Origin: Epithemia pelagica
Taxonomy: Eukaryota; Protista; Bacillariophyta
Direction: 5' to 3'
NCBI GenBank assembly: GCA_946965045.2
Contig: OX337230.1
Coordinates: 3,968,001 to 4,032,000 of the forward strand
DNA: 64,000 bases
This document shows, one piece after another, positions 30,313 through 55,813 of this stretch. Every line of letters starts with the position of its first letter. The first letter of the stretch is position 1. The notes under the pieces are model-generated. The model was not told where the DNA came from, did not search any database, and saw only the letters and a program-made list of their open reading frames with translations. Both the position numbers and the translations under genes were made by a program.

Positions 30313-32229
30313 CGAGATGGGTCGCGTTTGGAAAGTCGACGCACCAAGACACACATAGATCCATGAAACATCCTTCAGCAAAAATAGGAACGAAACAAGA
30401 CTACCTAGTGAAGAAACGGACAATATATCTGATCCAGAGAGACCGTTGATGAGTTGAGGGGAGCCACCCAGTCAAACGGATTCGAACAACAAGAGTCATC
30501 GAGGAGGACAACGTTGTGACAGAGAGTGGACGGTCATCGGAAAATGGCAAATAGTTCCATTAGTATCTTTTTGGCAACCACAGAATTCGTTCCTACTAGA
30601 GTCTGCTGCAACACGTTCCGGAACGTGTCACGGATTCTCTCTCCGTCGTCTGTTGGAATGAATTTTTGTCTTTGCCGACGAAAAACCCATGCACCGTACC
30701 AAACGCCCCAGTGCCATTCCACGGCAACCACACCGATCTCCGAGGAGAGGAGCGGAATCCAACGGAAAAAAGCTTGTAAAAAAAGACAGTGCGTCTACGA
30801 CAACTCAATCTGCCTCGGCGGGCCATCTGAAGGCTTCCTCTGTTGCAGCTGTTCATACGAGGGAGAGAACTCCAATTGAGGTAGCAAGCATTCGAGGACG
30901 TCCATGAAAGTTGCTTCCATTTCTTCTTCTTCGTCCATGAAATCTAAACTATGAGATGTACCATGCATCGTTTTCCTTGTACCACCGGCACCTTCAGAAC
31001 TTCTAGAATCGTGGCTTTCCTGCGGAAGACCATCATTACAAGAACGGACCTGCTTCTTCTCGGGGCTGCCAGACGAACCTCTTTTGTTGTTGCCTCCGTC
31101 GTCGTTACTATCTCCTTCATCTTCTCCTTCATCTTCTCCTTCACCCTTTTCCATGATTGCACCACCTTCCATGCGTTGGGGGAACATTTGATTCCAGGAT
31201 GCACGATTTAGAAAGTCTGTCGGAGCTGAGGAAGCATCCGGGGCCTTCATCATGTGGCGGATAAGATAGTTTGCTTCCCCTTTAGAAGTTGCTGCGTATT
31301 CCATAAGAGCATTTTTCTTTCTGCTGAACCAATAGAAGTTCCATCTTGGACCAAGATCCGTCATGATTGTGAGAATGCCTGTATCTTTGTTCAGAAAACT
31401 AGCTGACAGATGCTGTAGAACAACCTGACGATGAATCTCTTCGGTGGCGTTGTTCTCTTGTTTCTTCAGTTCGATGGCAGCCCACATGTGTCTTTTAGCT
31501 GTGTGGATTCCTTGATGTCGGTTTGCAGCCATCACGACATCAATATTGCCTCTTGTCTTAATGCCAGATGGTAAAAACCTAACGGACAAGAAAGCACCGG
31601 ACTTGGCTGCATCAAAAAGCTTGCTTCCGTCAGGGAGACATAAATTGGAACTTCTGAGGTAGGCCATGTACTGGCTACGATTGTCTTTGGAATCCTCATT
31701 TTTAGTAGCATCCCAATAAAACGGAGCCATGTTCGTGCCTAGCTCATCGCATGCTCGCTTTGTGTCCTCATCCGGTTCCCAATCTGGTGCATCGGGTACA
31801 ATTCCAATCGCATCGATGGCTCTATTGAATCCTGATACCGACGGGTTGGAGATAACTAGAGTTTTTTCCTCCTCCTGTTGTAGCTTCACCCAAGTGTAAA
31901 TGGAGTTAATTTGCGCAGGCGTATCCAATTCGCTCGTGTCGTCTTCCCACTCCGCCGCGTCCCTTTGAAAATGAAAATTAGACGGCCTCTGCAGAAACAC
32001 AGTCAAATACAGAGGTGCATGTGCCGTCAAGGGACGTGGTAAATTAAAAAAAATGATGTGAGGGCTTCAGTTTGTTGACTCTTGGATGGCGTCATGCGAA
32101 ATAGATTGTTGTTCCTGCGGTCATGTAGTTCAATACTAGCCATCCGTCTCGAAAATAGGTGAAGTAGGCAAAGAGAGATTCGAATCTCAACATCGAATAC
32201 AGATACACAATCACAAATTCAAACTCACT
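30313..32229. repeat. 1.9-kb direct segmental duplication, copy 1 (copy 2 is 53720-55631)
   Basis: Near-identical sequence from CGAGATGGGTCGCG to the splice donor; only a handful of substitutions and small indels seen. Confidence 0.97.
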
Positions 32230-32459
32230 TGTGCCTCCTTTTCTTCGCTGGTTCTTTCTGCCTTTCGGAGACGAATAATATATCGATTGAGTCTCCTTCG
32301 CGCAAAGAAATCGGTAACATTTAATGCGTCATATACTTCAGTCATATTTTCATGTTCAGGATCAAATTGCTCAAGGGGTATGCCAGTACCAGATCCATCT
32401 TTATATGCTGCAGCTGCTTTTTTCCATCGCCGTTCCTCATCTGTTGTTTCCATTTCCAT
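30795..32459 (-). CDS. Crinkler(CR)-like effector A: helical SAM-like header exon + REase-fold (PD-(D/E)xK) exon
   Basis: Exon 1 is 32459-32229 (77 codons), phase-0 intron 32228-31989, exon 2 is 31988-30795. Motifs FYWDATKNEDS..NR.QYMAYL, RGNIDVV...IELKK...RQVVLQ...LTIMTDLG.RWNFYWF resemble CRN C-terminal nuclease-fold domains as recalled. Confidence 0.75.
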
Positions 32460-32932
32460 GGTTGCTGTCTTCGGTTTGATTGCCGCTCCATGTAAATTTT
32501 GCGGAGGAAAGCTCTATATCCGGGTTGGATTGGCCTTTCTCCGCAAATCATGCTGCGCACATCGCACATGCTCGAGCATGCTCCGCGCGTCCGATTACAT
32601 GCCCACTGAGCCTGAGGCCGGTCCTTAAACCCAAATGACTCTACGGGAGTATGGATAGCGCGCAGCGGGTCGACTACTCGTAGACCGAAAGTTCAAAGTT
32701 ACAAAGTTGCAAATTTAAAACTTTTAATTTTTGAATAAGCTACTTCGGCGAAGTCCGTTCTAAACTACTCCTACTAGCAACTAGTAGATGGTGGCCGTGA
32801 AGACCGCCCTTCTTCTCCAGCTAGGTACTCCTAGTCCACTGGGCAATCTAAACCAAGTTAGGTCTATATTCATTTGGATGGTTTGGACACTTTATTCAAC
32901 ATTCACAAATCGTTCAATCAATTTCTCCATGA

Positions 32933-35030
32933 TATCAGCGTTCACACAATGAACATGCGCCTCCTCCAAACTCAGCACAGCACATACAAGTTCACGATTG
33001 ACCTCGCACCACATCCTACGAATACATCTAGTCATAATTTCCAAATTTGTAAAACACTCACTACACAGATTTCATTCGTCCCTAGCAGTTTACATACTGT
33101 CAACCGGATTGGACCGATCGACCATGGGAACCTCCACTATTGGAACGGCCGCCTCGTTCGGAACTCCCACGAACAACTCATCGGAGAAACCGTACCTCCA
33201 TTTAACAATGAGAGGTTATGAGCCCAAGCGGTCTCACTGGGCTTTAACCGTGTTCCCTTTACTTTTGTTTTTATACTTCACGATGAAGTTTGATTTACTT
33301 ATCAGTTCAATCGCGATGCGACAGGCTTTACAATTGCCTGAATCCAAAATGCGAACCGAACCACCTCTCGACGGGATCAAGTGGGAGTCAACGTTGCAGT
33401 TGCACATGCATCCGAATACTTTCTGGTCACCCAACCAAATCGCTTCGTTGCCCTTACCTTTACGATTACCTGCACGATCACTTGCACCAACACTCACTTT
33501 TTGGACGAATCCAAAACAGTTACGTGCCAATTGCTTTACGTCGTTTCCATCTACCTCTACGATCACCATGAAGATCCCGACTCCGGTTTCAACCCCCAAG
33601 AAGTCCTCTGGGACGGCCTCCTTTACGGCGGATACCACAATCAATGGTATCTCGTTGACTGCTACGAAAAGTCGCAACTTCGACTTGGGCGCCTTTGCTG
33701 ACACGATTACCCCTGCTTACCGCAGTAGCTTGTCCGGGAAGACGTTGTTTGATTTTCGCAACGATGCTGTTGTTGGTTTGACTCCTCCCTTCAGTTTCTC
33801 TTGGGCCGTCGTCAGTACGACCGATGACAAGTCGTTCTTCCAAGACAACAACAAGACGATGATGCAACTCTACTCCCTCAAGGCCCGGTTGACGACCTAC
33901 TGCATGCATTCGGTTTTTGACATCCTACCTGTCGATCCGGATACCGGCGTGCTTGATTCTTCCGGTGGAACTTTGAACTTGCTGGAACATGCCTGTTCGA
34001 TCTCTGAAGCCCAGGTTCGTCTCAGCAGCCAAATTTATGCTGAACGTACTACGGACAACCTGCATCCGCAGAACTTGTCTTGGACCCAGGATTTACTTTT
34101 GGCCTCTTGCGATGGCACGCTTCGGGCAGACCTCGAGAATCGCTTGGTGACTATTCCCGATAACGAACAAGGTGGGCCCTTGGTTTTACACATGGTCTTG
34201 TCCCAGTTACTCATGACTACAAGTGAAGCAGCCCGTGGAATCGTCCGTCGTTTGGAGAAACACAAGGTGACTGACTATCCAGGCAAAAATATCACTCAGT
34301 TTTGTTGTACGTTTAACAACGTGGTTCTACGCCTTAGTTTGAGCGGTCATATTCCATCTGACATCTGTGGGATTTTCCAAGAGCGCCTTCTCACTTGCAC
34401 CGTCCCGAAGTTCCTCAGCATGATGGAGTATCTCAACAACGACGACGATCCCATCCTTCAAGACTTTTTCGGTTTACGAGAACGCGTCGTCGCCAAGTAT
34501 CAGTCGCTCCTTCTCTCGGAGAAATGGTTGCCTACAACTACTTCTGGTAGTGCAGCCTTTCCAGCCTTGACCGAAACGAAGAAGACTGGCGTCCTTAATG
34601 ATGGATCCAAAGGCAAACGTCCTCCCGTTCCCATCGATACTACACCTCCGGCCGACGGCGAAGACAACTGGAAATTCCATCCAACGAACCCCAAGCGTAA
34701 ATTGTGGTGGTGCGCACTCTGTCCCAATGGGACTCCAACTGGCACGGGCCGTTGGGGCAACCATAGTACCGATCGTCATGATCCCACCAAGGTTAAGCGT
34801 AAATCCTCTGAGACGCCTTCAGCTCCAGCTGCTAACACGGCCTCAGATGCTGGACCTTCCGACTCTCCCACTGCTGCACCGTCTGCCTCGTCGACTACTG
34901 GGGACGATGCTGCACCACCGACCTATGCCAACGTTGCCTTGACCTCCTTGCGTGATTTTCGCTAGGGCGGGTGTTTCTCCAGCACTCCAATGCCCTCTAT
35001 CCCCCTTGGTTGGATACCTTGTTTTGTTGG
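32933..35030 (+). mobile_element. Truncated Copia (CoDi-like) LTR retrotransposon: 5' LTR, PBS and gag; pol missing
   Basis: LTR 32933-33213 (starts TATCAGCG) is homologous to the LTR at 46125-46392. PBS GGTTATGAGCCC at 33214. gag ORF ends at 34965 and is closely similar to 44367..46220. Homology stops at about 35030. Confidence 0.9.
33124..34965 (+). CDS. Copia gag-like protein with zinc-knuckle-like WWCALCP...H motif
   Basis: Closely similar to the gag of the intact element; ATG lies inside the LTR. Confidence 0.8.
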   Translation: MGTSTIGTAASFGTPTNNSSEKPYLHLTMRGYEPKRSHWALTVFPLLLFLYFTMKFDLLISSIAMRQALQLPESKMRTEPPLDGIKWESTLQLHMHPNTFWSPNQIASLPLPLRLPARSLAPTLTFWTNPKQLRANCFTSFPSTSTITMKIPTPVSTPKKSSGTASFTADTTINGISLTATKSRNFDLGAFADTITPAYRSSLSGKTLFDFRNDAVVGLTPPFSFSWAVVSTTDDKSFFQDNNKTMMQLYSLKARLTTYCMHSVFDILPVDPDTGVLDSSGGTLNLLEHACSISEAQVRLSSQIYAERTTDNLHPQNLSWTQDLLLASCDGTLRADLENRLVTIPDNEQGGPLVLHMVLSQLLMTTSEAARGIVRRLEKHKVTDYPGKNITQFCCTFNNVVLRLSLSGHIPSDICGIFQERLLTCTVPKFLSMMEYLNNDDDPILQDFFGLRERVVAKYQSLLLSEKWLPTTTSGSAAFPALTETKKTGVLNDGSKGKRPPVPIDTTPPADGEDNWKFHPTNPKRKLWWCALCPNGTPTGTGRWGNHSTDRHDPTKVKRKSSETPSAPAANTASDAGPSDSPTAAPSASSTTGDDAAPPTYANVALTSLRDFR

Positions 35031-35040
35031 ATCTGTAGCC

Positions 35041-35106
35041 GTTGTATTCTTGCTGATTGGAGAGTAGTAAAGGTTTGCCATCAACAGTGATTAGCTTGCC
35101 CTCCAT
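35041..35106 (-). pseudogene. Truncated CR header exon (ubiquitin-like type), 22 codons
   Basis: MEGKLITVDGKPLLLSNQQEYN aligns with MARKRIIVDGKPVQLSNHQEYN at 55813 and 58748; similar TTGGAAC(A/G)xCACCATGG start context. Confidence 0.75.
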
Positions 35107-35429
35107 GGTGTTGTTCCAATCTTTCTGTGGTACTCCTAATTACCTTTTCACCAAAAACCTATTCATTTCGCCGACTCACGAGGGAGTGTGAGGTTTCCTA
35201 TCTCCTATCACCGAACTGCTGACGTTCCCTACTCTTCCTTCATATTCCCCTACAATACGACTCATTCTACATCTCTCGGTTTCAGTTGTACTGTTTTCAG
35301 TTTTGCTGACGTCACTGTAGAGATTAAAGTATTCCCATTAATCTGTTCGTCTGAGTTCAGTATGAACGGGACGGGTGGGCCGTAAGGCTTGGGGTCTGGG
35401 GTGGGAATTTCCAGGAAGACCAGCTGTAA

Positions 35430-35904
35430 GGCCGTTCCTTACGCCAAACCAAACCAAACCTGAATCCTCAAATTTCACCATCATGACGCCATATATCCGG
35501 GTATTTTGGCTTTTCAGGTTTGGTTCAGATTATTTTGAACCAAACCTGATATCAGGTTTGGTTCAGATTGGCGCGTTTACCAAACCTGAAACACACTAGG
35601 GATAAAGTTTTCGTTATACTAATGTACACCTTTCATACAGTTTCGAATTCGACTTGGCATGCGTGCGTTGAACTCCAACGGTCACACGTCCCCCTATCTC
35701 TAATGAAATGAGACGACATGTCCTGTGTACGATGGAATTCTTTTAGTATTCAATTTAATGAAGTCAAATGGGGGAAGTTGGGGGACGAAGCGCGGTCTCT
35801 GACTTTGGTTTGGTTGAGTGTAAGGACGGCAAATCGCACCTTTTTCCAAACAAATCCTGGAAAGGTCTTCACAGGTTTGGTTTGGTTCGGCGTAAGGAAC
35901 GGCC
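35430..35904. mobile_element. PIF/Harbinger-type MITE (Tourist-like), 475 bp
   Basis: TIR GGCCGTTCCTTACGCC(A/G)AACCAAACCAAACCTG at both ends; 3-bp TSD TAA at 35427-35429 and 35905-35907. Confidence 0.9.
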
Positions 35905-37391
35905 TAAGGGCTGGGTCATCGATTTGACTGCACGTTTTGAAAATGCTAAGGGGCCGTATAGGGTTAAGGATTTCATCATAGATTTTCAAATTACGCGGTG
36001 ATTTCCCTCACATTTTCTTTCGCGATGACCATGGCGGTCTTCCATTGTTGATTGTGAGCCCCGTAGTCAAAAGTAACTGCACAAAATAGCGAAAATAGAC
36101 CCCCCGGGAAATTTGGACAGGGGGAACAACGCCAGCGACATTGCATGCGTAACTGAAAATAGAAGATTAACATATTAATCTGTGAAGTAGAGAAGAAAGG
36201 GGAAAAATCAATAACGACGCGTTGACGCTCAGAACAAATAAACGGGGAAAAATGGCAAAAAAGGGGGGGGGGTGAAAAAATCGAGTTGTATGGATGTCAC
36301 TGACTGTTCTGGGGGCGTGCTGTACGACTATGTAGCAAAGAGATAGATATTTTAAATATGGTGTCGCAGTTTTCCGGGTTTCCACTGAATTCCTGGAAAT
36401 GAGGGATTACCTGGGATTTATTTATCTCCAGCAGTTGGAAGACGTAAATACCTAAATTCGAACATGGAAATTTGGAAGTTGAAGCGATAGGGAAATTTCC
36501 GAAGGACAGAACACGGCAAAAATAATGCATGGTAGCGATGGGGAGTGGCTATAGAAATCTAGTAGTTGTAAGATAAGACAGCTGATGGGGGGAAATAACC
36601 CCACACTAACGGTAAAAGAAGTGCTGGTTGTCTAAAATTAGAGACTCTTATGAAATTGAAGCATTTTGGTTCGGGTCCTTTGGTTCTGAGTTCCACCACG
36701 ATGGGAATGGAGTGAACAATTACAGCGCATAGTGCTCCGGGCCTTGTGGTTGTGGATCTGGCATTGCTTTGTGTGATTGGTGGTTGTTGAGTTTTATTTT
36801 TGCCAGAGTCGCCACGTATGGAATAGGAGAGAAGATTATTTGGAGACGACAAAGAGAGCAGATGAGCGAACGGACGAGAAACAGAAAAAAGCAGTTCAAT
36901 GTAAAACACCATTAGAAGAATAGTGAGCGGAACACGAAAGACGAACAAGAGAGAGGAAAGCAGACGGAACCAACTGGGGTGAAGGGAAGAACTCCATGAC
37001 TGGGACTAAAATGGAGTTGACTTGGTTCCATAGTGATAATGATGATGGGAAGGAAACTGGAGGGAAGGGTGATGATGATATTAGAGGAATGTAAGTAGGA
37101 GCAACAGTGATGAGTGCGAGTCAGTTTACCCCCATGGGAACCAATATGGAGTGCAATATTCCCCCTTCAGACAACCCGTTTCCCTTTCCTGACGCTATCC
37201 CTTTTGCTTTTTGATTGCAACTATTTCGTACATCTTTCACTTAACACAATAAAGCAATGTCAAATAAGGTGGCAAACTAACTCCCACTTTGATTATTTGT
37301 GTAGTGGCTGACACCATCTTGTATCGCATCTCGTACGAGACTGCGTCAATGACATAGACTTTGGAAATACTACGGACTACTCTAACGTCAG

Positions 37392-38157
37392 TTATATTGC
37401 CTCGAGGTCTAAAGAATCAAAGAAGTGGCTGACACCAACTTTAACACCTCTCTGCATCAATTTCAAACTGTCATCTTCATTAGGACAATCATCGTTTCTT
37501 CGACATAGATGAAGGCAAACTTCCTGGGCCAAAATAACAAAGAGCCTTGAAAATAGCACTGTTTTTAGCACGTTGCTTCTTCCTTGACTCTGCAGCAAAT
37601 GGACCCAGTTCCGCACAGGGATGCTGAGTCCACGAGAGTGCGGTTGGACGAGGTGCTTCAGGTTTATCTCGGGAGAGGGGTGCAACCAAGAAAAACGGTT
37701 GTGCCGTTGAGGGGTGCCCCCACCATTGATCAAAATGATAATTTTTATAAATTTTCCATTCCGTAGGGTGTGGCTGAAGATACTCCGGTGGATTGGACCA
37801 ACGGATTGACGCCCATACTTTCAGCGGCTCAATACGTGGTTTCTTAAATGAACGAAAGCTGTCTGTTGGGCACTTCCATTTGGTGCCCAAATCATCCTCC
37901 CAAACTTTCACCATTGTCTCTGATATTCCAACTCCCCTGACCACTTGGTCACCCCATGTGCCTTCACGCAAATCGTGCATGACACCATTTGCATCCATTC
38001 TGCGGAACTGAACGTTGCGCTGCTCCATGTAAGGCAACTTCGTGGATGAGGACATTTGGACTTCTATAGAGACACTTGTGTAGTAGCAGCAATCCTCTTT
38101 TATCGATATGCTTGCACTAAGGCTTGAAATTGGACTGCAGGATGGAGCCGTAATCAA
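37392..38157 (-). pseudogene. Unknown protein, apparently frameshifted (two overlapping ORFs)
   Basis: ORFs 37489..38157 and 37392..37733 overlap in different frames with protein-like composition; no recognisable domain. Confidence 0.35.
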
Positions 38158-38389
38158 TCAGACTAGAACCTGTCCAACTCACTCTTATGGCATTTTGCAC
38201 TATATAGTGGAAGTGTAAGCACATATTCTACTATACAGTGGAACTGTACGTGCACATTCCAGTATACAGTCGAATTGTACGTGTACTGCGTGGACCGAGT
38301 GTGACACGAGCTGAGATGGCAACAAATGGCTGAGACTGTCGCATGCGATGTGATGCAAGATGATGTCATCCACGTGATCCATTTGTATT

Positions 38390-39020
38390 ATCCGGACGGA
38401 CTTTTTCCTGACGCAAGACGAGTCTCAACAATCATGATATGCTGTCTTGAATTAGTCGCGTCACCCACATTATAAACTCTAAATCCTAGATAGCAATGTA
38501 ACTCATAACGGATGTTAGGCTGTTATTACAAGACGAGTGGAAGTAGTGGCATGTGACATGTGATGCGAGATAATGTCACCCACGTCCATAACACGTGAGG
38601 GCCACCATCTTCCATTATGTGACGAACTAGCTGACACCATCCATCACCTACCATACGAGACTGCATGATGCAAGATGCTGGATTATCATGATGGCCTTTT
38701 TCTGACGTAAGAGGAGTCTCAACAGTCATGATATGATGTCGTGAAGTACGTGCGTCACCCACGTTACAAATTCTAAATCCCAATGGTAGGTTGGTATTAC
38801 AGGATGTTTGGAAGTAGTGTCATGCCTCATGTAACGTCACCCACGTCCATAACACGTGATTGCCACCAACTTCCATCATGTTACGAACTGGCTGACACCA
38901 TCGTCCATGACCTACCATACGAGACTGGTTGATGCAAGATGGTATCATGAACGTCATCCATTCCGATTATCTCGATGGCTTTTTTTCTGACGTAAGAGGA
39001 GTCTCAAGAGTCATGACATG
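38390..39020. repeat. Degenerate tandem repeat, period about 285-294 bp, about 2.2 copies
   Basis: Anchor TTTTT(C)CTGACG(C/T)AAGA.GAGTCTCAA with TGACG at 38409, 38703 and 38988. Confidence 0.85.
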
Positions 39021-39185
39021 ATAGTTGCGTCGCTCACGCGTTGGAATGGTTGCGTCGACTGAAATGCGGTAACTCATGTTATGTACGCGTTTTTTGTCAC
39101 TTCGTCTTCTTGGGCTCGCTTTGATTGACCGACCTACACGTGTAGTTGCTGAACACTTCTTTGCAATCCCGACCTCTACGATGCC

Positions 39186-39311
39186 AGATGATGATCAGGG
39201 GATGAGGAGTGAGGATGATGAGAGATTGTTTCTTTTGTTAGATGATGATCAGGGGATGAGGAGTGAGGATGATGAGAGATTGTTTCTTTTGTTGCCCCCC
39301 CCCCCCCCCCC
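39186..39311. repeat. 54-bp perfect tandem duplication followed by a C17 homopolymer
   Basis: AGATGATGATCAGGGGATGAGG... at 39186 and 39240; poly-C at 39295-39311. Confidence 0.9.
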
Positions 39312-39624
39312 TTCCCATGGTGTAGATTGGACGTGAGGTGTCATTGTGAAGGAGTTTTCTGTTCCACCCGACGAGTTGTTCGTAGAATGTCCGAATGAGG
39401 CGGCCGTTCCATTGAGGGAGGTTCCCATGGTCATTCAGAAAAGTTCCGGTTTGCAGTTCGTAAGATTCTGCTAGGGACGAATGTAAACTGTAGTGCAAGT
39501 TTTGTTACTTCTCAAATTATGACTAGGAGCTAAGTTGGGTGTAGTGCGAGGTCGATATTTTGTTGCATGTGTGGGAGTGAATGGAGGAGGCGCATGAACG
39601 CTGATACTCGCCCTTGACCGAGGG

Positions 39625-44361: not shown

Positions 44362-44366
44362 CCGCC

Positions 44367-46220
44367 CTAGCGAAAATCCCGCAAGGAGGTAAGGGCAACA
44401 TTGGCGTAAGTCTGGGGTGGTGCAGCAGTCGGTGTAGCAGGGGCACTGTCAGTCAAAGAGGTGTCGGCGGCTGGAGGAGAATCCGTAGTGTTCGCAATGG
44501 CAGCCGTGTCAGAGGGTGTGGCTGCAGGAGAGCGGCTGGAATTCACCTTGGTGGGGTCATGACGGTCTGTGCTGTGGTTACCCCAACGGCCGATGCCGTT
44601 TGGAGTACCATTCGGACACAAGGCACACCACCACAATTTGCGCTTGGGATTCGTCGGATGAGGCTTGGAGTTGGCCTCACCAGGACCAGGAGGAGTAGTG
44701 TCGATCGGTAAAGGTGGACGACGACCATTGTTCGACTTGGGGGTTCCAACCGGAGCAGCTTTCTTGGTCTCAGTGAGAGCAGGAAAAGCGGAGGTATCGG
44801 TCTTGACGGTCGGAAGCCATTTCTCGGACAACAAAAGAGAATGGTATTTGGCCACGACACGTTCGCGTAATCCGAAAAAGTCTTGAAGGATGGGGTCGTC
44901 GTGATTCTCCAAATAGTCCATCATGCTGAGAAACTTTGGAACCGTGCAAGTGAGAAGTCGTTCGACGAAGATACTGCAAATGTCGGCCGGGACATGTCCA
45001 CTTAAGTTCAAACGTAGAACCACATTGTTAAACGTAGAGCAAAACTGATTTATGTTTTCACCCGGATAGGCAGTGACACTGTGTTTCTCCAATCGGCGGA
45101 CGATACCACGAGCGGCGTCGGTAGTAGTCGTCATGAGTTGCGTGAGGATCATATGAAGAACCAAGGGCCCACCCTGCTCGTTGTCAGGGATCGTGACCAA
45201 GCGATTTTCAAGATCGGCACGAAGAGTCCCATCACAGGAGGCAAGCAACAAGTCCTGAGTCCAAGACAGATTCTGCGGGTGCAGACTATCGGTGGTGCGT
45301 TCCGCATAGATCTGGTTGCTTAAGCGGACTTGAGCCTCGGAGAGCGAACAAGCATGGTCGAGTAAGCTCAAAGTAGCACCTGACGAGTCCAAAATGCCGG
45401 TTTCTTCATCAACAGGAAGGATATCAAACACCGAATGCATGCAGTACGTCGTAAGACGTGTCTTGAGTGTATAAAGTTGCATCATAATCTTGTTGTTGTC
45501 GTCGAAGAAGGACTTGTCATCGGTCGTACTGACAACGGCCCAGGTGAAACTGAAGGGAGGAGTAAGTCCAACAACGGCTTCATTACGAAAGTCAAACAGC
45601 GTCTTCCCGGATAAGGAACTGCGATAGGCTGGAGAGACCGTGTCGGCGAAAGCTCCGAGTTCAAAAGTACGACTCTTGGCGGCAGTCAAAGTGATACCAT
45701 TCATCTGAGTATCGGCTGAAAGGGAACCGACTCCAGAGGTCTTCTTGGGCGTTGAAACAGGAGTAGGGATCTTCATGGTCTCAAAGATAGTAGGCAAAGG
45801 CAAGGAACTCAACAGCAAAGGTAAGCGGTAAGTTTGAGTCTGTTTTGGTTTGGACCAAAAAGTGAGTGTTAGCTCCCGTGCTCCAAGTTGTGTTGGGCCC
45901 AGTAACGGAGTGTTCTGGTTGGTGGACCAAGTCTCCAACTGCAATGTTGACTCCCAGTTGCCGAATGTCGGTCGCGTCAGGGTTCGGATTCGTGTAGGGG
46001 GCACAAATGAAATTTGTCGTACCACGAATGAATCGTTAAGTAAAACAATTCTTGTCGGTAAGTAAACGGTCATCAGTAAGGTGAATACTGTTACAACCCA
46101 GTGGAACCGCTTGGGCTCATAACTTGTCATTGTGAAGGAGTTTTCTGTTCCACCCGACGAGTTGTTCGTAGAATGTCCGAATGAGGCGGCCGTTCCATTG
46201 AGGGAGGTTCCCATGGTCAT
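44367..46220 (-). CDS. Copia gag
   Basis: 617-aa ORF starting within the 5' LTR; C-terminal WWCALCPNG...H motif. Confidence 0.85.
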   Translation of the reverse strand: MTMGTSLNGTAASFGHSTNNSSGGTENSFTMTSYEPKRFHWVVTVFTLLMTVYLPTRIVLLNDSFVVRQISFVPPTRIRTLTRPTFGNWESTLQLETWSTNQNTPLLGPTQLGARELTLTFWSKPKQTQTYRLPLLLSSLPLPTIFETMKIPTPVSTPKKTSGVGSLSADTQMNGITLTAAKSRTFELGAFADTVSPAYRSSLSGKTLFDFRNEAVVGLTPPFSFTWAVVSTTDDKSFFDDNNKIMMQLYTLKTRLTTYCMHSVFDILPVDEETGILDSSGATLSLLDHACSLSEAQVRLSNQIYAERTTDSLHPQNLSWTQDLLLASCDGTLRADLENRLVTIPDNEQGGPLVLHMILTQLMTTTTDAARGIVRRLEKHSVTAYPGENINQFCSTFNNVVLRLNLSGHVPADICSIFVERLLTCTVPKFLSMMDYLENHDDPILQDFFGLRERVVAKYHSLLLSEKWLPTVKTDTSAFPALTETKKAAPVGTPKSNNGRRPPLPIDTTPPGPGEANSKPHPTNPKRKLWWCALCPNGTPNGIGRWGNHSTDRHDPTKVNSSRSPAATPSDTAAIANTTDSPPAADTSLTDSAPATPTAAPPQTYANVALTSLRDFR

Positions 46221-46627
46221 TCGGAAAAGTTCCGGTTTGCAGTTCGTAAGATTCTGCTAGGGACGAATGTAAACTGTAGTGCAAGTTTTGTTACTTCTCA
46301 AATTATGACTAGGAGCTAAGTTGGGTGTAGTGCGAGGTCGATATTTTGTTGCATGTGTGGGAGTGAATGGAGGAGGCGCATGAACGCTGATATGAGGAGA
46401 TAAATGATGTAGTCTTGTATACAGGTGGCATATGAGTTGCGATGCGAGATCATGTCAGCTATGTCAAGAAAGGATGCCGTGGCTGCCACCATCCACTACA
46501 CATGTCGTACGACACTGCATCAATATGTGTGTACTAATGTGGGAATACGCGATGGAAACACAACTTACACGCATTACTATTTTCTGATTGTTATGATGAT
46601 AACCACCCAGTGCATGGTGATTACTCA

Positions 46628-47705
46628 TTACATTGTTAACTTCACCTTTTCTTTTTCTTCATTAGACAAGAATTTCTTTGGAACTCCCAAACATCCAGCA
46701 TCTTCAACTGTCCGTGAACCATAAGGATAAAACAACTTCATCATTTCTTGTTTCTCTTCTGTATTTGCCCAGCCTGTATAAACCTCGAAGTCACTGTATT
46801 GCATGCGCAACAAGGATATAATACCATGCCGAGCAAGACCTTCCGACCCATCGATAGAAAAATTGCTCTCATTGAAATCCTCCAATCCATCCAACACTTT
46901 TTTGTCCTTGAACTTCAGATTATTCACAACGTCGTGAAATGAACGTGTCAAGTAACAAAGAGCTTCTGTATCTGGTTTCTCCTCCATATACACAGCAATC
47001 ATGCCAATATTTTTTATCATATGAATTCCCCGTTGACTTGGCTGTCCCCATCTGACGAATTTCTTTCCCATTCTCGTCCACCATGTAAAAGATGTTATTG
47101 GAGTCGACCATCATATCAGTGAAGAAGTTATTCATGCTATTCTCCACATTATTTATCATGAGGAAGTTTGAAAAACAATAGAGAAATGTACCATCGGATG
47201 CCTTTTTTGCAACAAGTAGTAAGATAACATATTTGTTCATCAGTTGGAAGGGGCCAATGCATCGCGTCTTTGTCAAGTAATTCGTCTTGGTTTCTGTTGG
47301 CTTGTTTGGGCTCCCTGAGACAAACTTAAGCTTCATACCTTCTTTAACAGGGGAATTCATAAGCATTTTCTTCGGTGACATAACAATCATGTTATCGTCA
47401 TCACTGTCATTATCTTCACTGTCTTCAATATCATCGTAGTCATTTGTTTTTATTTCCTTCGTCTTTAAGGTTTCTTCGATCTCCTTGAATGAATCGGTTT
47501 CCATCTTATCGTAAGTGGTTAGAAGTTTGGGTGGCATTGTTGGAGTGTCATCAGAATCATCACTGGAGAAAATTGTCAAGCTTCTAGATGGTCCTGCTTT
47601 GTTTGTCGAATCCTTGGCTTTCTTAGGGATTGACTTCTCTGTGCCATTTGTGGCAGGGCTGTTTCGTGTTGCTTGACCCATAGTTGTGTCTGAATTTATG
47701 ACCAA
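46628..47705 (-). pseudogene. Unknown acidic/K-rich protein, frameshifted
   Basis: ORFs 46920..47705 and 46628..47071 overlap; protein-like composition switches frame near 47040. Confidence 0.5.
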
Positions 47706-48139
47706 TGTTCAAATTCATCTATTCCTTTACCACTTCCATAACGTTTGTATCACTATCCACTGTCTATGCATGACAATGACGTCATGAAGATGAACAAGTG
47801 GATATGCTTCAATAAGCACAGTTCAAGTAGCTGACTTCATATCGCGTCACACTGCCGCAGCGTCTTGATTTTTGATCGCCTTCAGTGTACTTCACAACGC
47901 AGTTGACACATGGTTGATAGCGAGATGACCTCACCTCGTATGCAATTCAATACCTGTCAAATACGTCACACATCGCATCTTCTGTGACTTATGTTTCACG
48001 CACAAATCAAGACGTACTACATGTGTACTTGACACGCACCTAACGGAAAAGATGTCGTTCAGGTATGACAATTGGCAACAGAGCTTGCATGTACTTGAGG
48101 CCACTCGTCCCGCACATCGCACCATAGCGCACTTACCTC

Positions 48140-48385
48140 TAGAACGAAATACAGCTCATAGCTAGATTAGCGCGCTCACGGCCATGAGTCACGAGGTCGA
48201 CTTGCTTGATAAGGTATAAGATACTACGTAGTCGCGCGGGTCAGGACGAACATGGGAGAACAGCATATTTTAGATTATATTTTATAGAACGAAACACAGC
48301 TCATAGCTAGATTAACCCGCTCACGACCACGAGTCCCGAGTCGTACTTGCTTGATTAGGTATAAGGTTACGAGTCACGCGGGGAA
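48140..48385. repeat. About 100-bp diverged direct repeat (period 145 bp) upstream of the MBD gene
   Basis: TAGAACGAAA(T/C)ACAGCTCATAGCTAGATTA at 48140 and 48285. Confidence 0.85.
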
Positions 48386-48459
48386 GGACTCTTGATTGCA
48401 AGTTGTTTGTTTCTCTTCAAAGTCCGTTTGATACGCATCTGGAGCAACCGCGTTGTACA

Positions 48460-49286
48460 ATGGTAGTTACAGTCATCTTCATCGATTCCGACAACAGCTC
48501 CGAAGAAGAGGAGGAAATGAGGCGGGAGGATGGTGGAGGTCCTGAAGGCGCCATACCGGAAACAGATGCGGAAGTGGTCAGCCAGATAATTGAAGAAGAA
48601 GTTGCGGTTGATGATTCAAAGGCAACGCGAACAGGAGCGAACCAGGTTCGCTGTAAAACGAAGGCATTTGAGTCTGTGCTTGACCAATCTTCCTGTTACG
48701 AAAAAAAAAATGCTTGCCATCTGGAGGAAAGAAAAAACAAATAGCTACGAAATCTCTGTTGGATGACAAATCTCAGAAAGAAGGACCTTCGTTAAATGGT
48801 GGAACTACACCCACCGTATCGAGCACTTCAACCACACACAGCCCCAAACAATCCGTCAGCAAAAAGAAGTCTTTGGCTCCATCGCTTGGACAGAAATCAT
48901 CTTCTCCTACTCCGAAATCAACTTCTTCCGTTACATCATCGGTCAAGCCGAAAAAGGCAGTAACGAAAACAACGCTTGTGAAAGCAAAGAAGGAAATGGT
49001 CAAGCGGCAGACAAAAGCTTCCACAGACAAGTCAGCAAACGGTCCAGTCTATGTAGGTGTACCAACGGAATTCCTACGTGAAGAGGGTTGGCCCGAAGGT
49101 TGGGTGGAGAGGCGGTATAAGCGACAAAGTGGAATGACGAAAAGTCGCGTTGATTTCTACTGGTTTCCTCCTACGACGGACGGGAGAGAGCGGAAACTCC
49201 GTAGTATCGTGGAAGTCAAAAGGTACCTTGCCGTACTTGCGACGACAGGAAGTGAAGATAAAGCTTTTGCTGCTCGCAAGGGATAA
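48460..49286 (+). CDS. MBD (methyl-CpG-binding domain)-like protein; interrupted near an A10 run (frameshift or degenerate intron)
   Basis: C-terminal WPEGWVERRYKRQSG...RVDFYWFPP...RKLRSIVEVKRYL fits the MBD pattern P.GW...R..G....D.Y...P....RS..E...YL. The acidic N-terminal ORF is in another frame. Confidence 0.7.
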
Positions 49287-49371
49287 ACCAATGTAAAATG
49301 ATTTACAGATCTGCAATCTTCAGGATGATGCGTGGTATGTCGCATCGTCTAAGTACTTTGTCAGAACACAG

Positions 49372-49938
49372 CTAAGAGCTACTAACGATGAAATGTAGTT
49401 GCAGTACAAATGAATGTAGGTAGTAGGACACCATTCTGTCTTCCAGGGGAACGTCATGAACAATCTTGTGCAGTCTATGTACTAAATCAGAATCAATGAC
49501 TTGGACCCATAACGTTTCCCCCCAATCCCTTGACGGAGGAATGCGAGCCAATTCGCCGGTTGAGGTCGAAGAATGGGCTAAGATAGAGTATGCCTTTGCG
49601 AACGCCATCCATCGAAATCATGACACAAAATCTCTGATTGTACTAGCATTCGAACCTTTGCTCTTTGTGTCAGTTGTGGCGGCGCCGCCTCCAAAGCCGC
49701 CCTTTCGAACGCCATTCGAAACACCACCAAGCCAAGCGAAGCCAGAGGAGACATTGTAGGTTGCAACGCTACCAAACAACCTCTGCTTGTAGTGCATCGC
49801 TCTATATTCCATTTTTGATTCTCTGACGTTCGTCACATTGCTTCGCCGCGATGATGTGCCCACCCCCAACACGTACTCAAATGGCATCCCCACTACCGCC
49901 GCTGATTCATCTTGCATCACATTTACACTGACAATCAT
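49372..49938 (-). pseudogene. Unknown protein with an in-frame TGA
   Basis: ORFs 49618..49938 and 49372..49608 are in the same frame, separated by a single TGA. Confidence 0.35.
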
Positions 49939-50455
49939 TCTCTCAGATGCCTAGGGTCTGACGTGCGCCTGCACATTACTGACTTCATCTCGCATCACAT
50001 TTGATGTTACTGTGCACGTCACCTCTAAGGGGTCATAAGTCCGATGACATCAAACCGTTAGACCTACGAATGACGTAAGTGAAAATGTACACCCAACCAC
50101 CACACGTCACTGTAAAGTGACATCGTCTCACCTACATTGCGCACACTCTACAGCTTCGACCACCAGAAGCAGCACCCTATATTCCATTTTTGAATCCTGA
50201 CGTTCGTCACATCGCTTCGCCGCGATGATGTGCCCACCCCCAACACGTACTCAAATGGCATCCCCACTACCGCCGCTGATTCATCTCGCATCACATTTAC
50301 ACTGACAATCATTCTCTCAGATGCCTAGGGTCTGACGAGCGCCTGCACATTTCTGACTTCATCTCGCATCACATTTGATGCTACTATGCACGTCACTCTC
50401 TTAGGGATCATAGGTCCGATGACATCAAAACCGTTCGACCTACGAATGACGTAAG
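49802..50455. repeat. About 278-bp direct repeat, 2 copies, period 375 bp
   Basis: CTATATTCCATTTTTGA...CCTACGAATGACGTAAG at 49802-50079 and 50177-50455. Confidence 0.95.
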
Positions 50456-50828
50456 AAAAAGTCTATAGTAGTACGCATTAATGCGTGATCGCGTCAGTGA
50501 CCTCATGAATCCGGTATGACTAAGCGAATCTATAGTAGACGCATTAATGCGATCTCGCGTCAGCGACCTTATGAATTCTGCAGTTTAGTAGCTATGCGAC
50601 TATGTGATACCATCTCGTATGACAAGTGATGATGATGGTGTCATCGACTTCTTGAATTCTAATTATATAGATAGCAATATGGCGGACCTCAAACAACATA
50701 TTTGTACCCGTCGGTACATGATACGGTGGAAGACGGCGCAGAAGTGTCATAACTTCTGATTACTTACATATGATGATTACAGCTGTCAAACTGGGTTCAA
50801 TTTTAGTCGTCTTCTCGTTTTGCTACCT

Positions 50829-51836
50829 CTATTTCTGACGTGGTTTCTTGGCTCCACTTTTGTCTTCATTAGTCGTTGAATTGGAGGCAGACTCGTACTC
50901 CGCAAGCAGGTTTCTGTGTCGGCGTGGCCGCATGGTAAGATTACAAGGGCACAGCTTCAGCACAATCTGCTGGCTGTCGTTGACGACGTAGGATGGATGA
51001 ATAGTATCCTTGTTCAACTTCTTGTGGCACTTTGGTACACTGCAGATAAAGGTCGATTTTGGGCCAACTCTCGTGTACACATACATTGTCATGGGATGAT
51101 GGTTTCCTCCACCTTCTGACCATGACACACACTTGTTTTGCGGTCCCAAATATTTCTGCTCCATTGTATAAAACGACGCAGACGATGACGTCTCCATTTT
51201 AAACTTCTTCCGTTCTTTGTTAACCACGTCCAATGGACCGACTTGGAAACTCAATGGATCAAATGTGACAATTTTTGAGCCTTCTTTCATCGTCGCAAAC
51301 AACCCAGCGACAAAATCGTTTAGGTAGGGCGCGGCAGGGGCCGAACGCGTTCCAAACACGTCACCAAAATTGTTACAGAATACTTTCATCACGACGTTTC
51401 CCGACTATGTCAGGAAATGACGATGTTCCGCCTTTTGTAGTTCACCGTTGCGTAGCTCCACCGCCGCGTGACCCACCAACTCCACCAGTTGCTTTCTAAA
51501 AGTAAGCGACATGTCATAACGCCCCTTCACAATCTCGATACCTCGGCTTGTACAGCCATGGGTATAGGCTGCTTGCATCACTGCGTTCCCCAGACCATGT
51601 CCAAAATCTACGAAAATGTCCGATGATTTAAGTTGGAGAAGATCTAACAGCATTGTCTCTGTAGGTTCTGGCAAGAGGCGACCATATTGGGCGCTTGAGA
51701 TGCACGTATTGGCTTTCCTTATTTCACGTTGCGCCTCAATGGCTTGCGTTGAATCAAGCCCAGTAATGTTGCGACCAGCTTTCTCCCAGTTCTCAACGAA
51801 TTCCTCCACGGTAATTCGTGGCATGCTGAAGGCCAC
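50829..51836 (-). pseudogene. DOT1-like (H3K79) class I SAM methyltransferase with an in-frame TAG
   Basis: YGRLLP...LQLKSSDIFVDFGHGLGNAVMQAA...GIEI...; after a single TAG (51405-51407) the same frame continues VFCNNF...MKEGSKIVTFDP. Confidence 0.75.
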
Positions 51837-52548
51837 CTGCTACTGACTCAGCCGTATTACTCTGCCTGTAAGAATTCTGTCTTCCTACATTCACTTATCA
51901 CCATATACCCAGCTGCGTGTGTTCCGTTTTCTTCACAACCAGAGGTGCAAGCAAGTTTTCTTCACCACCAGAGGTCTAAGTGAGTTTTTCACTGGTGGGA
52001 GACTGACGTTCGCTTTCATGCAGTCTCGTGTGGCATGTTACGGAAGATCATTCAGCGATATAACTGACGTCAGGAAATCACTGACGTAGTGTCGTGTATT
52101 ATGTGACGCAACATCGTGTCAGCTAAGTCATAACTGTACTATTACTACTGGCGACGCAGTGGCCTGCACGACCATTGGCAGAATACGCTTACCATCTCAG
52201 CGTCATCCGTTATCATCCATCAGCGTGCACAATACGGTGTACTGCAACAAGGCCAAAATCACATATGCAGGCAGGAGTAAATGACGCACCATGTGCGTGA
52301 CGTATTTGAAGTTATAGTGACTTCGATATTATTAAATATCAGTGTATGACGCGACTCAGCTCTATGCGATGACGTACTTCAAGTGACGCTAGATAACAAT
52401 TCGGCACATTCCTTGTTTGACCATAGCGTATTCATCTCTCAATATATAAAAATTATCATTCTTCTAGGGTGGTTGCCGTCTGTTTGGGGGCTTAAACGCG
52501 CAATTTTGGGGGATAAGTCTCCTATTTCTCATCTCTCTCTCTTCCTGA

Positions 52549-53274
52549 CAGGGTTTGGAATTTCCAAAATCACCCAAGGAAAGGGAATTTAAATTTCCAA
52601 TTTGGCATCATTCAAGTCTCGAAATTGAATTCGAATTCAGGCTTTCCCAGAAGCAAAATTGGAAATTGAATAGAATCCGTAATTTTGGAATTAAAGTCGT
52701 CCGTAATGAACTTGAAATTGACAATTCCAAAGAATCAGTTCCCAAAATTGAATGGAATTTCAAATTTCCAAAATAGAAGTATGAGAAATTGAATCAAAAC
52801 TCTCAATTTCCATTTTACGATTCTTTGAATTGAATTGAATTCACATTTTTACCCATAATTTCATTTCAATTTCGAAATTAGAAGCTTCTTATACGAGAAA
52901 ACTACCCATTTTGCTCACGTAATAGCAAGAAATAGTACAAAATTTTGTGTCAAGTTGAGTAATTGCTCCTTTAAAATATAGGAAATTGAATGGAAATTGG
53001 CCAATGCTCGAGTAGAAGGGATGGAAATTGAATGAAATTAGGCATTCGTCGCATCGCAGTAATAGAAATTGAATGAAATTGGGCATTCCCGATGACTATG
53101 GCAGTGAAATGGAATGAAAATGTGACATTTTACACGAAGGGAAGCGAAATTGGAATTGAAATTATACATTCCGTAGTCGAGGAAGACAAAACTAATGAAA
53201 ATTGAGTAATTTCGTTTAAATTCTTCCCAATTTCCGAAATTTACAAAAATCTCAATTCGGAATTCCAAACCCTG
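52549..53274. mobile_element. hAT-type non-autonomous element (MITE), 726 bp
   Basis: TIR CAGGGTTTGGAATT at both ends; 8-bp TSD CTTCCTGA at 52541-52548 and 53275-53282; interior rich in GAAATT/AATTGAAT motifs. Confidence 0.93.
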
Positions 53275-53719
53275 CTTCCTGAACACACAGCACACAAACG
53301 ATAAATTCTTGGGCGACCTACATGCGAACAAACGTCGTAGAAATAAATTTTCTCAACAGCGCATCAGCATAAAGACTCAATCAGAGACGTTTCTCTTATA
53401 GATCTGTTAGAATAGTTATTCTGAGTAGTGTCTCAAAATAAGAAGGTGCGATGTTGACCGTCTCTAAATAAGCTTAGAATATGTCTTCTTTTGAGCTAAG
53501 TGCTAAGTAGACCTTTTCTATCCGAGTCTTATCTGCAGTGTCCAACTGCTAGAACTACCGACTGCAAACTGCGGACTACGGAGAGACCGCCTCCTCCACC
53601 CAATATTTTCTCACTCCCAGGTAGACTACCTGGAGGAAAACGGTTGTCTCCTAGACTCCTAAAATCCCAAACTTTTTGGACGATTGAAGCCTGATCCAGG
53701 AAAAAGCAATCCATCACAT

Positions 53720-55631
53720 CGAGATGGGTCGCGTTTGGAAAGTCGACGCACCAAGACACACATAGATCCATGAAACATCCTTCAGCAAAAATAGGAACGA
53801 AACAAGACTAGTGAAGAAACGGACAATTTATCTGATCCAGAGAGACCGTTGATGAGTTGAGGGGAGCCACCCAGTCAAACGGATTCGAACAACAAGAGTC
53901 ATCGAGGAGGACAACGTTGTGACAGAGAGTGGACGGTCATCGGAAAATGGCAAATAGTTCCATTAGTATCTTTTTGGCAACCACAGAATTCGTTCCTACT
54001 AGAGTCTGCTGCAACACGTTCCGGAACGTGTCACGGATTCTCTCTCCGTCGTCTGTTGGAATGAATTTTTGTCTTTGCCGACGAAAAACCCATGCACCGT
54101 ACCAAACGCCCCAGTGCCATTCCACGGCAACCACACCGATCTCCGAGGAGAGGAGCGGAATCCAACGGAAAAAGCTTGTAAAAAAAGACAGTGCGTCTAC
54201 GACAACTCAATCTGCCTCGGCGGGCCATCTGAAGGCTTCCTCTGTTGCAGCTGTTCATACGAGGGAGAGAACTCCAATTGAGGTAGCAAGCATTCGAGGA
54301 CGTCCATGAAAGTTGCTTCCATTTCTTCTTCTTCGTCCATGAAATCTAAACTATGAGATGTACCATGCATCGTTTTCCTTGTACCACCGGCACCTTCAGA
54401 ACTTCTAGAATCGTGGCTTTCCTGCGGAAGACCATCATTACAAGAACGGACCTGCTTCTTCTCGGGGCTGCCAGACGAACCTCTTTTGTTGTTGCCTCCG
54501 TCGTCGTTACTATCTCCTTCATCTTCTCCTTCATCTTCTCCTTCACCCTTTTCCATGATTGCACCACCTTCCATGCGTTGGGGGAACATTTGATTCCAGG
54601 ATGCACGATTTAGAAAGTCTGTCGGAGCTGAGGAAGCATCCGGGGCCTTCATCATGTGGCGGATAAGATAGTTTGCTTCCCCTTTAGAAGTTGCTGCGTA
54701 TTCCATTAGAGCATTTTTCTTGCTGCTGAACCAATAGAAGTTCCATCTTGGACCAAGATCCGTCATGATTGTGAGAATGCCTGTATCTTTGTTCAGAAAA
54801 CTAGCTGACAGATGCTGTAGAACAACCTGACGATGAATCTCTTCGGTGGCGTTGTTCTCTTGTTTCTTCAGTTCGATGGCAGCCCACATGTGTCTTTTAG
54901 CTGTGTGGATTCCTTGATGTCGGTTTGCAGCCATCACGACATCAATATTGCCTCTTGTCTTAATGCCAGATGGTAAAAACCTAACGGACAAGAAAGCACT
55001 GGACTTGACTGCATCAAAAAGCTGGCTTCCGTCAGGGAGACATAAATTGGAACTTCTGAGGTAGGCCATGTACTGGCGACGATTGTCTTTGGAATCCTCA
55101 TTTTTAGTAGCATCCCAATAAAACGGAGCCATGTTGCTGCCTAACTCATGGCATGCTCGCTTTGTGTCCTCATCCGGTTCCCAATCTGGTGCATCGGGTA
55201 CAATTCCAATCGCATCGATGGCTCTATTGAATCCTGATACCGACGGGTTGGAGATAACTAGAGTTTTTTCCTCCTCCTGTTGTAGCTTCATCCAAGTGTA
55301 AATGGAGTTAATTTGCGCAGGCGTATCCAATTCGCTCGTGTCGTCTTCCCACTCCGCCGCGTCCCTTTGAAAATGAAAATTAGACGGCCTCTGCAGAAAC
55401 ACAGTCAAATACAGAGGTGCATGTGCCGTCAAGGGACGTGGTAAATTAAAAAAAATGATGTGAGGGCTTCAGTTTGTTGACTCTTGGATGGCGTCATGCG
55501 AAATAGATTGTTGTTCCTGCGGTCATGTAGTTCAATACTAGCCATCCGTCTCGAAAATAGGTGAAGTAGGCAAAGAGAGATTCGAATCTCAACATCGAAT
55601 ACAGATACACAATCACAAATTCAAACTCACT
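53720..55631. repeat. 1.9-kb direct segmental duplication, copy 2
   Basis: Matches 30313-32229. Confidence 0.97.
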
Positions 55632-55813
55632 GGTTGGACAGGCGGCCCCAGCCTGTAGGTGCCGCTGTCATCAAGGGAATCAAAACCGCCTATTTCTGTG
55701 CCGTTCGTATCTTCAAGGCACTCCACGCGCTTTCGATTGATATAGTCGTTATATTCTTGGTGATTGGAGAGTTGCACAGGTTTGCCATCAACAATGATTC
55801 GCTTGCGCGCCAT
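54197..55813 (-). CDS. Crinkler(CR)-like effector B: ubiquitin-like header exon + the same REase-fold exon as effector A
   Basis: Exon 1 is 55813-55631 (61 codons, MARKRIIVDGKPV...SLDDSGTYRLGPPVQP), phase-0 intron 55630-55391, exon 2 is 55390-54197. Confidence 0.78.

Follow-up and report, generated by a model that had tools for sequence, protein, structure and literature searches.

How can two genes of one locus share an intron and a second exon that are nearly identical and yet begin with first exons that have nothing in common? This question is raised by a 64,000-nucleotide stretch of the genome of the diatom Epithemia pelagica (contig OX337230.1, positions 3,968,001 to 4,032,000 of the forward strand), which is called the window here and in which positions are given unless another locus is named. 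Two genes on its minus strand, A and B, each consist of a short first exon (the header) that is joined through a 240-nt intron to a long second exon (the warhead), and in both genes this warhead carries a domain that we call R. The answer that we favor, with a probability of roughly three in four, is that A and B belong to a two-exon family of the Crinkler type whose headers and warheads are re-assorted by recombination in the shared intron, with the A/B pair as the youngest product of that process.

Modular proteins of this type are already known as a kind. The CR family is found in free-living eukaryotes, and its headers and toxins are combined combinatorially. Crinkler (CRN / CR) effectors were reportedly redefined in these terms by Zhang, Burroughs, Vidal, Iyer and Aravind in 2016 (NAR 44:3513). 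The definition of CR proteins allows other, non-ubiquitin header families, does not lead one to expect signal peptides, and has restriction endonuclease (REase) and REase-kinase modules as the commonest C-termini (PMC5289972).

One warhead behind two unrelated headers

A self-BLASTN comparison of the window revealed a direct repeat, 30313-32229 against 53720-55631, in which 12 mismatches and 2 gaps are spread over 1917 columns (99.11% identity). Inspection of the boundaries showed that similarity drops to background past both repeat ends. On the minus strand, each copy takes in 482 nt of 3′ flank together with a complete exon 2 and intron, which belong to gene A in the first copy (R_A, 30313..32229) and to gene B in the second (R_B, 53720..55631). 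Gene A begins with header A, which is 77 codons long from its ATG and is delimited by an open reading frame (ORF) and a donor site (32459..32229). It continues through a GT...AG intron of 240 nt in phase 0 (32228..31989) and closes with an exon 2 of 397 codons (31988..30798) and a stop codon at 30795-30797. Gene B follows the same plan, with the 61 codons of header B (55813..55631), a phase 0 intron (55630..55391) and an exon 2 that likewise has 397 codons (55390..54200, or to 54197 with the stop). The joined frames of header and exon 2 are free of stops and would encode proteins of 474 amino acids (aa) for gene A and 458 aa for gene B, neither of which has a signal peptide.

The two introns are 100% identical to each other, and exon 2 differs between the genes in 10 codons (8 replacements and 2 silent changes). 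The ratio of replacement to silent substitution rates (dN/dS) of R_A versus R_B is ~1.2, a figure that derives from 11 changes and is too thin for interpretation. For the headers, BLASTP gave no alignment of A with B at E ≤ 100. The original prediction, made from the letters of the DNA alone, had described near-identical 1.9-kb copies with a 240-nt intron, a phase 0 splice and intact ORFs, placed behind unrelated headers of 77 and 61 aa, and this description stands in all of its parts. The ends of the R copies bear neither a poly-A tail nor terminal repeats that would mark retroposition or a transposon. Relatives of R with at least 94% identity were found by protein search solely on the window contig and on the contig of locus L005, a second haplotig described below, and the next match has 61%. 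Because the close matches are confined to these two contigs, R_A and R_B must be derived locally from one another. Should the intron be retained, translation of either gene would stop 5 intron codons past the header. Prokaryote-style gene callers gave the internal ORF of exon 2 only (P0001 with 364 aa and P0002 with 360 aa).

The shared intron as the probable site of exchange

Genes A and B have relatives in European Nucleotide Archive (ENA) assembly ERZ21939226, in which the window is part of contig ctg1262l. A third family gene lies in the window itself (56788..58748, minus strand). It has a header that we call B′ (58748..58563; 62 aa, 87% nucleotide identity to header B), a 359-nt intron (58562..58204) whose start is homologous to that of genes A and B, and an exon 2 with a protein-kinase domain unrelated to R (58203..56788). 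When all loci are considered together, header A is joined to R in window gene A, to kinase type 1 at L007 and to kinase type 2 at L008, L014 and L015, which are three segmental copies. Header B is joined to R in window gene B and at L005 and to kinase type 2 at L009 and L010, and header B′ is joined to kinase type 3 in the third window gene (58748..56788) and at L005. The combinatorial use of headers known from CR proteins is thereby found here as well, with header A on R and two kinase types and the header B type also on R and two kinase types. The kinase exon of L009 and L010 encodes 687 aa in frame and is 72% identical to the kinase of the header-A-bearing L008, so that R and kinase type 2 each pair with both headers. 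Donor, acceptor and phase are consistent in all family genes examined.

Positions 1 to ~191 of the intron, here called the core (32228-32038 in gene A and 55630-55440 in gene B), are homologous at 68-82% in all fetched family genes, regardless of whether the header is A or B and whether the warhead is R or a kinase. The core is the sole sequence common to genes that differ in both header and warhead. The intron tails go with the warhead: the final 49 nt occur with R only, and the kinase genes have a common, longer tail of their own. In all loci examined, the core stands at the header/warhead junction of this one family. It includes the donor site, whereas the acceptor lies outside it, and its flanks showed no duplications.

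Two near-identical blocks end in or at this same intron. One is the A/B repeat. The other is a 429-nt block of L009 and L010 that is 99.8% identical to window 55868-55440 and comprises a 55-nt leader, header B and intron positions 1-191. This block stops within the intron and is followed by a kinase-type intron tail and then by the kinase exon. The position of the junction in gene A can be bounded from differences between the introns of header-A and header-B genes. Intron bases 1-14 are the same in both types, the first header-type-specific position is 38, and the types are consistently told apart by 12 columns of the alignment, which amount to 6 substitutions and one indel. The gene A intron has the header-B state at 12/12 of these columns and is therefore of the header-B lineage throughout. 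Since the first type-specific position is 38, the junction in gene A is bounded to the interval from the exon end to intron position 37. The breakpoint had been predicted to coincide exactly with the splice donor. Pairwise identity indeed stops with the final base of exon 1, but the recombination junction itself can be placed no more finely than this interval. The wider proposal, that headers and warheads re-assort with the intron as the interchange site, is upheld by the shared core and by the occurrence of both headers on R and on kinases.

The core has no Rfam match, shows no covariation in RNAalifold, and has a minimum free energy no better than that of shuffles (z = +1.03). JGI metagenome contigs gave no match in one scan with a 27-nt IUPAC pattern from five aligned intron copies. 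We entertain, tentatively and with more doubt than belief, the idea that the core is a maintained recombination linker, i.e., a non-coding homology cassette that is kept similar by selection or constant conversion and that re-assorts modules in frame. If this idea is true, the linker would achieve through an intron what cassette exchange achieves in bacterial polymorphic toxins, and it would have been caught here while segregating and hemizygous.

A second haplotig without gene A

Locus L005 (ctg1299l of the same assembly) matches two parts of the window collinearly, 64000 to 53720 and 32229 to 20078, with 91-99% identity. It has a single R gene, header B with R, which is joined straight to the downstream flank of window gene A. 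Because the header-B gene is the only R gene on L005, gene A with one R copy is hemizygous, and so is the 21.5-kb segment between the copies (segment X, 32230..53719, defined by collinearity as absent from L005 together with one R copy). Other loci also occur as haplotig pairs, such as L009 and L010, which are 97% identical. At the 17 columns that are informative between A and B, the R gene of L005 agrees with B at 13 and with A at 4, and two of these 4 are close to the 3′ end; a further 29 differences are private to it. With such a column pattern, a young duplication on the haplotype of the window and a deletion between the R copies on the other haplotype after conversion are both compatible.

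The R domain as a predicted nuclease

Besides a REase-like core (approximately residues 30-265, with D150, E173 and K175), the protein encoded by exon 2 has a long helical extension at its N-terminus, a linker that is acidic and rich in Gly and Ser, and a conserved helix motif at its C-terminus. A protein search yielded 28 relatives, the named ones all from the pennate diatom Seminavis robusta, and a profile search of 1.84 billion representatives yielded 366 representatives. AlphaFold modeled the core confidently, with pLDDT values of ~85-94 in the window protein and of 90-98 in its relative P0005. When Foldseek was used to compare the models with PDB and BFVD, the named matches were nearly all of the REase type (Cas4, NucC, HsdR, AdnAB, Uma2-like, YqaJ and UL24). 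The top of the PDB lists was occupied by mitoribosomal chains, which we presume to be REase-like too. In an alignment of 12 sequences, D150 is invariant, K175 is nearly invariant and E173 is replaced in 2 rows. D150 and the ExK motif map to consecutive predicted strands in the AlphaFold model (151-155 and 170-174), and the order of strands is consistent with the α/β core of PD-(D/E)xK enzymes. R is probably a nuclease domain of the PD-(D/E)xK type as judged from these models, and the nuclease fold that had been assigned to exon 2 was recovered in the AlphaFold and Foldseek check as a PD-(D/E)xK-type fold and motif with weak scores. R is related neither to the kinase exon nor to a neighboring ORF with a DUF5898 match when compared by hhalign and BLASTP.

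Headers and the N-terminal diversity of R proteins

Header A, which had been predicted to be helical, is an acidic/basic sequence of 77 aa without a hydrophobic N-terminus, and it is ~50% identical to the N-termini of the R-domain proteins P0015, P0091 and P0124. Header B is 41% identical to the N-terminus of R-domain protein P0005. Header homologues fused to R in other species were matched with E values of 1e-9 to 1e-17. In other diatoms, on short contigs that resemble mRNAs, A-like and B-like N-termini run on into R without a break in the ORF, and this continuity agrees with the original prediction that exons 1 and 2 form one protein. Neither header has a Pfam match at E ≤ 1, and PDB sequence and PADLOC searches found nothing for either. 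A structural model of a B-type header is of low confidence (pLDDT 28-65), and short header rows are misaligned in the alignment used for it.

The header B ORF is present in identical form on 4 contigs, and a comparison of header B with header B′ gives a ratio of replacement to silent differences per site (pN/pS) of ~0.24, which points to purifying selection. Header A has paralogous exons at L007, L008, L014 and L015. It differs from that of L008 by 27 replacement and 2 silent differences (p ~0.04), a replacement excess against paralogues. Elsewhere in the window, a STAND-type ATPase included, there is no header-like sequence beyond the header exons noted here and one remnant in segment X.

The N-terminal extensions that precede R in the relatives found by profile search can be sorted into 9 or more classes with several members each, and 15 singletons are left over. 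Further diatom N-termini on R comprise a class that looks ubiquitin-like plus at least 7 other classes. The header classes are dispersed across a crude tree of R. Among the ubiquitin-like-looking headers of diatom homologues, P0033 alone reaches the Pfam Crinkler family PF20147, with a sub-threshold 15.5 bits (E 0.03).

A connection to Crinkler proteins through the warhead

PF20147 (Crinkler) is present in four R relatives, P0137, P0167, P0183 and P0152, with 50.6-60.7 bits at a cutoff of 24.6. Scored on the R profile, P0137, P0167 and P0152 give E values of 8.6e-19, 2.0e-13 and 9.3e-16, respectively, and their alignment with R spans the D...ExK core; the R-profile scores cover these three only, and P0183 belongs to the same cluster as P0167. 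The PF20147-bearing R relatives are fungal and belong to Entomortierella parvispora and Ambispora gerdemannii. In the three fungal proteins scored, the R domain is C-terminal to the Crinkler domain. Because R sits behind a canonical Crinkler header in fungi, the term Crinkler-like is justified on the warhead side, and it is in this respect that the original prediction of a Crinkler-type module holds.

Weighing the alternatives

A number of observations speak against a Crinkler-type family shuffled through its intron. The Pfam Crinkler domain matches neither header A nor header B, and a pattern search of the joined A and B proteins found neither of the oomycete motifs LxLFLAK and HVLVxxP. The splicing of both genes is a prediction from canonical sites, frame and homologues. 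R has no sequence match in Pfam, in PADLOC or, with either a single sequence or a profile, in PDB, and its Foldseek scores are weak (best E 4.8e-4 with a probability of 0.99, TM-scores 0.25-0.45). The header-type signatures of the intron come from about two independent lineages per type, the conservation of the core has no structure, RNA family or coding signal to account for it, and the family loci are those that were reached via protein look-ups in the ENA assembly. The direction and timing of the event can also be read in two ways. The near-identity of A and B could be due to a new duplication or to conversion between older neighbors, and L005 could be the ancestral single-copy state or the result of a deletion between two R copies.

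In an alternative that we consider rather unlikely, header A with R and header B with R are both old neighbors, a recent conversion homogenized the intron, R and the 3′ flank, and no combination is of recent origin. The sharp boundary would then be a pre-existing limit of homology, as conversion tracts stop at such limits. Concerted evolution of this kind gains from the finding of both combinations in other diatoms, from the distance of window header A to its closest paralogue (~5% to L007, versus 0.9% between R_A and R_B) and from the possibility of a deletion at L005. It must, however, explain the header-B signatures from the start of the gene A intron by a tract that reached the homology edge, and the A/B divergence (17 columns) is below the divergence of the L005 R from either copy (29 private columns). 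Even if it is accepted, concerted evolution still requires shuffling at the level of the intron for the combinations to exist, and it thus alters the date rather than the mechanism. An artefact of assembly, by which a false duplication or a chimeric join made the second R copy, is very improbable. The repeats are 99% identical and there are separate haplotigs, where false duplications can arise, but 12 substitutions and 2 indels distinguish the copies, a unique stretch of 21.5 kb with genes and transposons of its own lies between them, and neither junction falls in a repeat able to mislead an overlap assembler. The pair of haplotigs L009 and L010 (97%) fits a resolved diploid, and the evidence from the intron core and from L009 is independent of the window contig.

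Little probability is likewise left for a mobile introner that was inserted independently in unrelated genes, which would make intron similarity uninformative on shuffling. A similar intron between otherwise unrelated exons is what such an element would leave. The core, however, lacks an acceptor and flanking duplications and, at every locus reached by the protein look-ups, occupies the same header/warhead position in one family. In another diatom assembly, moreover, a relative of the R gene stands behind a ubiquitin-like header and lacks an intron of this type. In addition, the near-identical blocks reach into the exon on one side only (header B with the core at L009, the core with R in gene A), and such one-sided blocks are a signature of recombination rather than of insertion. 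We give the least credence to the view that the headers are chance upstream ORFs, that translation begins within exon 2 and yields no header, and that the end of the duplication is a coincidence. This view would fit the internal ORF called by the prokaryote-style programs. It does not fit the R-fused homologues that both headers have in other species (E 1e-9 to 1e-17), the purifying selection on header B (pN/pS ~0.24), the match of donor, acceptor and phase in every family gene examined, or the start of the conserved part of R, which lies upstream of the internal methionine.

Proposed mechanism and function

In the reading that we prefer, re-assortment through the shared intron, homologous recombination would begin in the intron core and could take the form of an ectopic crossover, gene conversion or synthesis-dependent repair. 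Recombination would carry one flanking side along, and header or warhead would be exchanged with the reading frame undisturbed. The identity of A and B would stop at the exon-1 boundary because the tract ends where homology ends. A and B would represent a 1.9-kb tract of intron, R exon and 3′ flank, now ~0.9% diverged, that came to lie behind header A or header B, with the header-A copy on one haplotype. As for function, family membership suggests that R may be a metal-dependent nuclease that attacks nucleic acids in the course of conflict or cell death, and that the header may set the routing, partner or control of the warhead. The toxin or defence system for which the pair had been named as a candidate is likewise a putative one. 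Splicing could gate the warhead as well, because the unspliced transcript would give the header and 5 residues only, and it may in this way act as a safety catch on warhead translation.

Segment X, neighboring genes and other loci

Segment X contains several mobile or repeated sequences. A 285-nt dispersed repeat lies just upstream of header A (32650..32934, minus strand), with copies of 96-98% in the L007 cluster. It is followed by a truncated long terminal repeat (LTR) retrotransposon with part of an LTR and a gag-like ORF (32947..35030, plus strand, left bound approximate) and by the remnant of a header-B-type exon, with ~28 first codons and an 18-nt leader, that is cut beside the retrotransposon fragment (35023..35124, minus strand). 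A complete Ty1/copia-type LTR retrotransposon with two long ORFs occupies 39339..46392 on the minus strand, and the truncated element is ~75% identical and inverted to it. The complete element has matches to RVT_2, gag-pre-integrase and SH3-like domains. Because its 268-nt LTRs are near-identical (99.6%, one position differs) and its 5-nt flanks are identical, it looks recently inserted. Segment X also holds ORFs for a DOT1-like histone methyltransferase (50829..51836, minus strand) and a weak match to a methyl-CpG-binding domain (48714-49283, plus strand), all of which, by virtue of lying inside X, are absent from L005 at this place. Tandem or short-range direct repeats with 83-100% identity are found at 38384-39293, 48140-48389, 49802-50455 and 8230-8434.

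The genes that neighbor A and B are ordinary cellular genes. No immunity or partner gene was seen near the cassettes, where the 482-nt 3′ flank has only short ORFs, which were not compared across loci. Toward the left end of the window, a 685-aa ORF (2401-4455, minus strand) with AAA_16 and NPHP3_N matches resembles a STAND/NLR-like ATPase, and its N-terminus has no similarity to header A or B. A 1725-aa ORF without a Pfam match (6577-11754, minus strand) lies in a region of strong AT skew. Next to the third family gene is a 492-aa ORF with a Pfam DUF5898 match (59775-61250, plus strand). The DUF5898 part of this ORF aligns to the glycine-loop/VAIK region of the adjoining kinase warhead (E 2e-4), and DUF5898 may be a kinase-like N-lobe. 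A Pandoravirus DUF5898 protein is among the weak structural matches to the R model. Past the right end of the window, L005 has a header-B-like exon fragment at its positions 1-97, just upstream of a gene for a MatE transporter. An offset derived from L013 puts window position 1 ahead of the start of ctg1262l, so that the window may stem from another or a scaffolded version of this assembly; the region of the finding lies well inside the contig.

Other loci of the family have features of their own. L007 (10001-16300) contains three kinase ORFs, one of them with a header-A exon, together with a second copy of the intron core at 14251-14395 and three copies of the 285-nt repeat that is also found upstream of window header A. 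The header-A kinase gene of L008, L014 and L015 lies in a segment of at least 10 kb that is present in three copies on one contig (ctg1357l), and its kinase frame is split into two ORFs in all three by an extra intron or a frameshift. The R-domain gene of L006 (9600-11062, ENA ERZ25042306) has 77% nucleotide identity and copia-type retrotransposons on its flanks. Immediately in front of it is a header that looks ubiquitin-like, from which it is separated by one apparent frame change but by no intron of the kind seen in this family.

Significance and comparison with known systems

Relative to the literature searched, in which we found no report of CR proteins in diatoms, what is new here is the occurrence in a diatom, the two headers, the uncurated R module and, above all, the conserved intron core as a zone of exchange whose product is still segregating. 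CR-type proteins are thereby extended to diatoms, and two header families and a nuclease-like module are added beyond the curated libraries. The mixing of modules in eukaryotic CR genes has mostly been inferred from protein architectures, whereas here the exchange can be read in the DNA. With the newest combination on one haplotype and missing on the other, exon shuffling through intron recombination becomes testable with ordinary sequence and expression data. A layer of control may also be present, as the warhead is predicted to be translated only after splicing.

Like other CR proteins, the diatom proteins have a short N-terminal header, an enzymatic C-terminal module and no classical signal peptide. 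They differ in that their modules are on separate exons joined through a conserved intron, whereas the recombination hot spot proposed for oomycete CRN proteins is a coding motif that ends the N-terminal region (PMC5289972). Bacterial polymorphic toxins such as Rhs and CdiA offer another parallel, with C-terminal cassettes that are swapped by recombination at a conserved junction behind a constant delivery or N-terminal part and with PD-(D/E)xK nucleases as frequent tips (PMC3482391). The bacterial systems, however, have junctions in coding motifs, immunity genes and known delivery systems, whereas in the diatom the junction is an intron, both ends are variable and no immunity partner was seen. 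At the level of fold, R resembles the PD-(D/E)xK nucleases (Cas4, NucC, Uma2-family and RecB-type) in the order of strands and helices, in an Asp that starts a strand and in an ExK on the next one. It departs from them in having no sequence match to a solved or curated family and in its extra N-terminal helical extension, acidic linker and C-terminal helix.

Exon shuffling through introns is a familiar process, and conserved introns lie beside variable exons in the var genes of Plasmodium and in the toxin genes of cone snails. The diatom genes are like these in that a conserved, phase-compatible intron stands between a variable and a less variable exon. They are distinct in that two blocks of at least 99% identity end in or at one 240-nt intron within a single genome and that one of the products is hemizygous.

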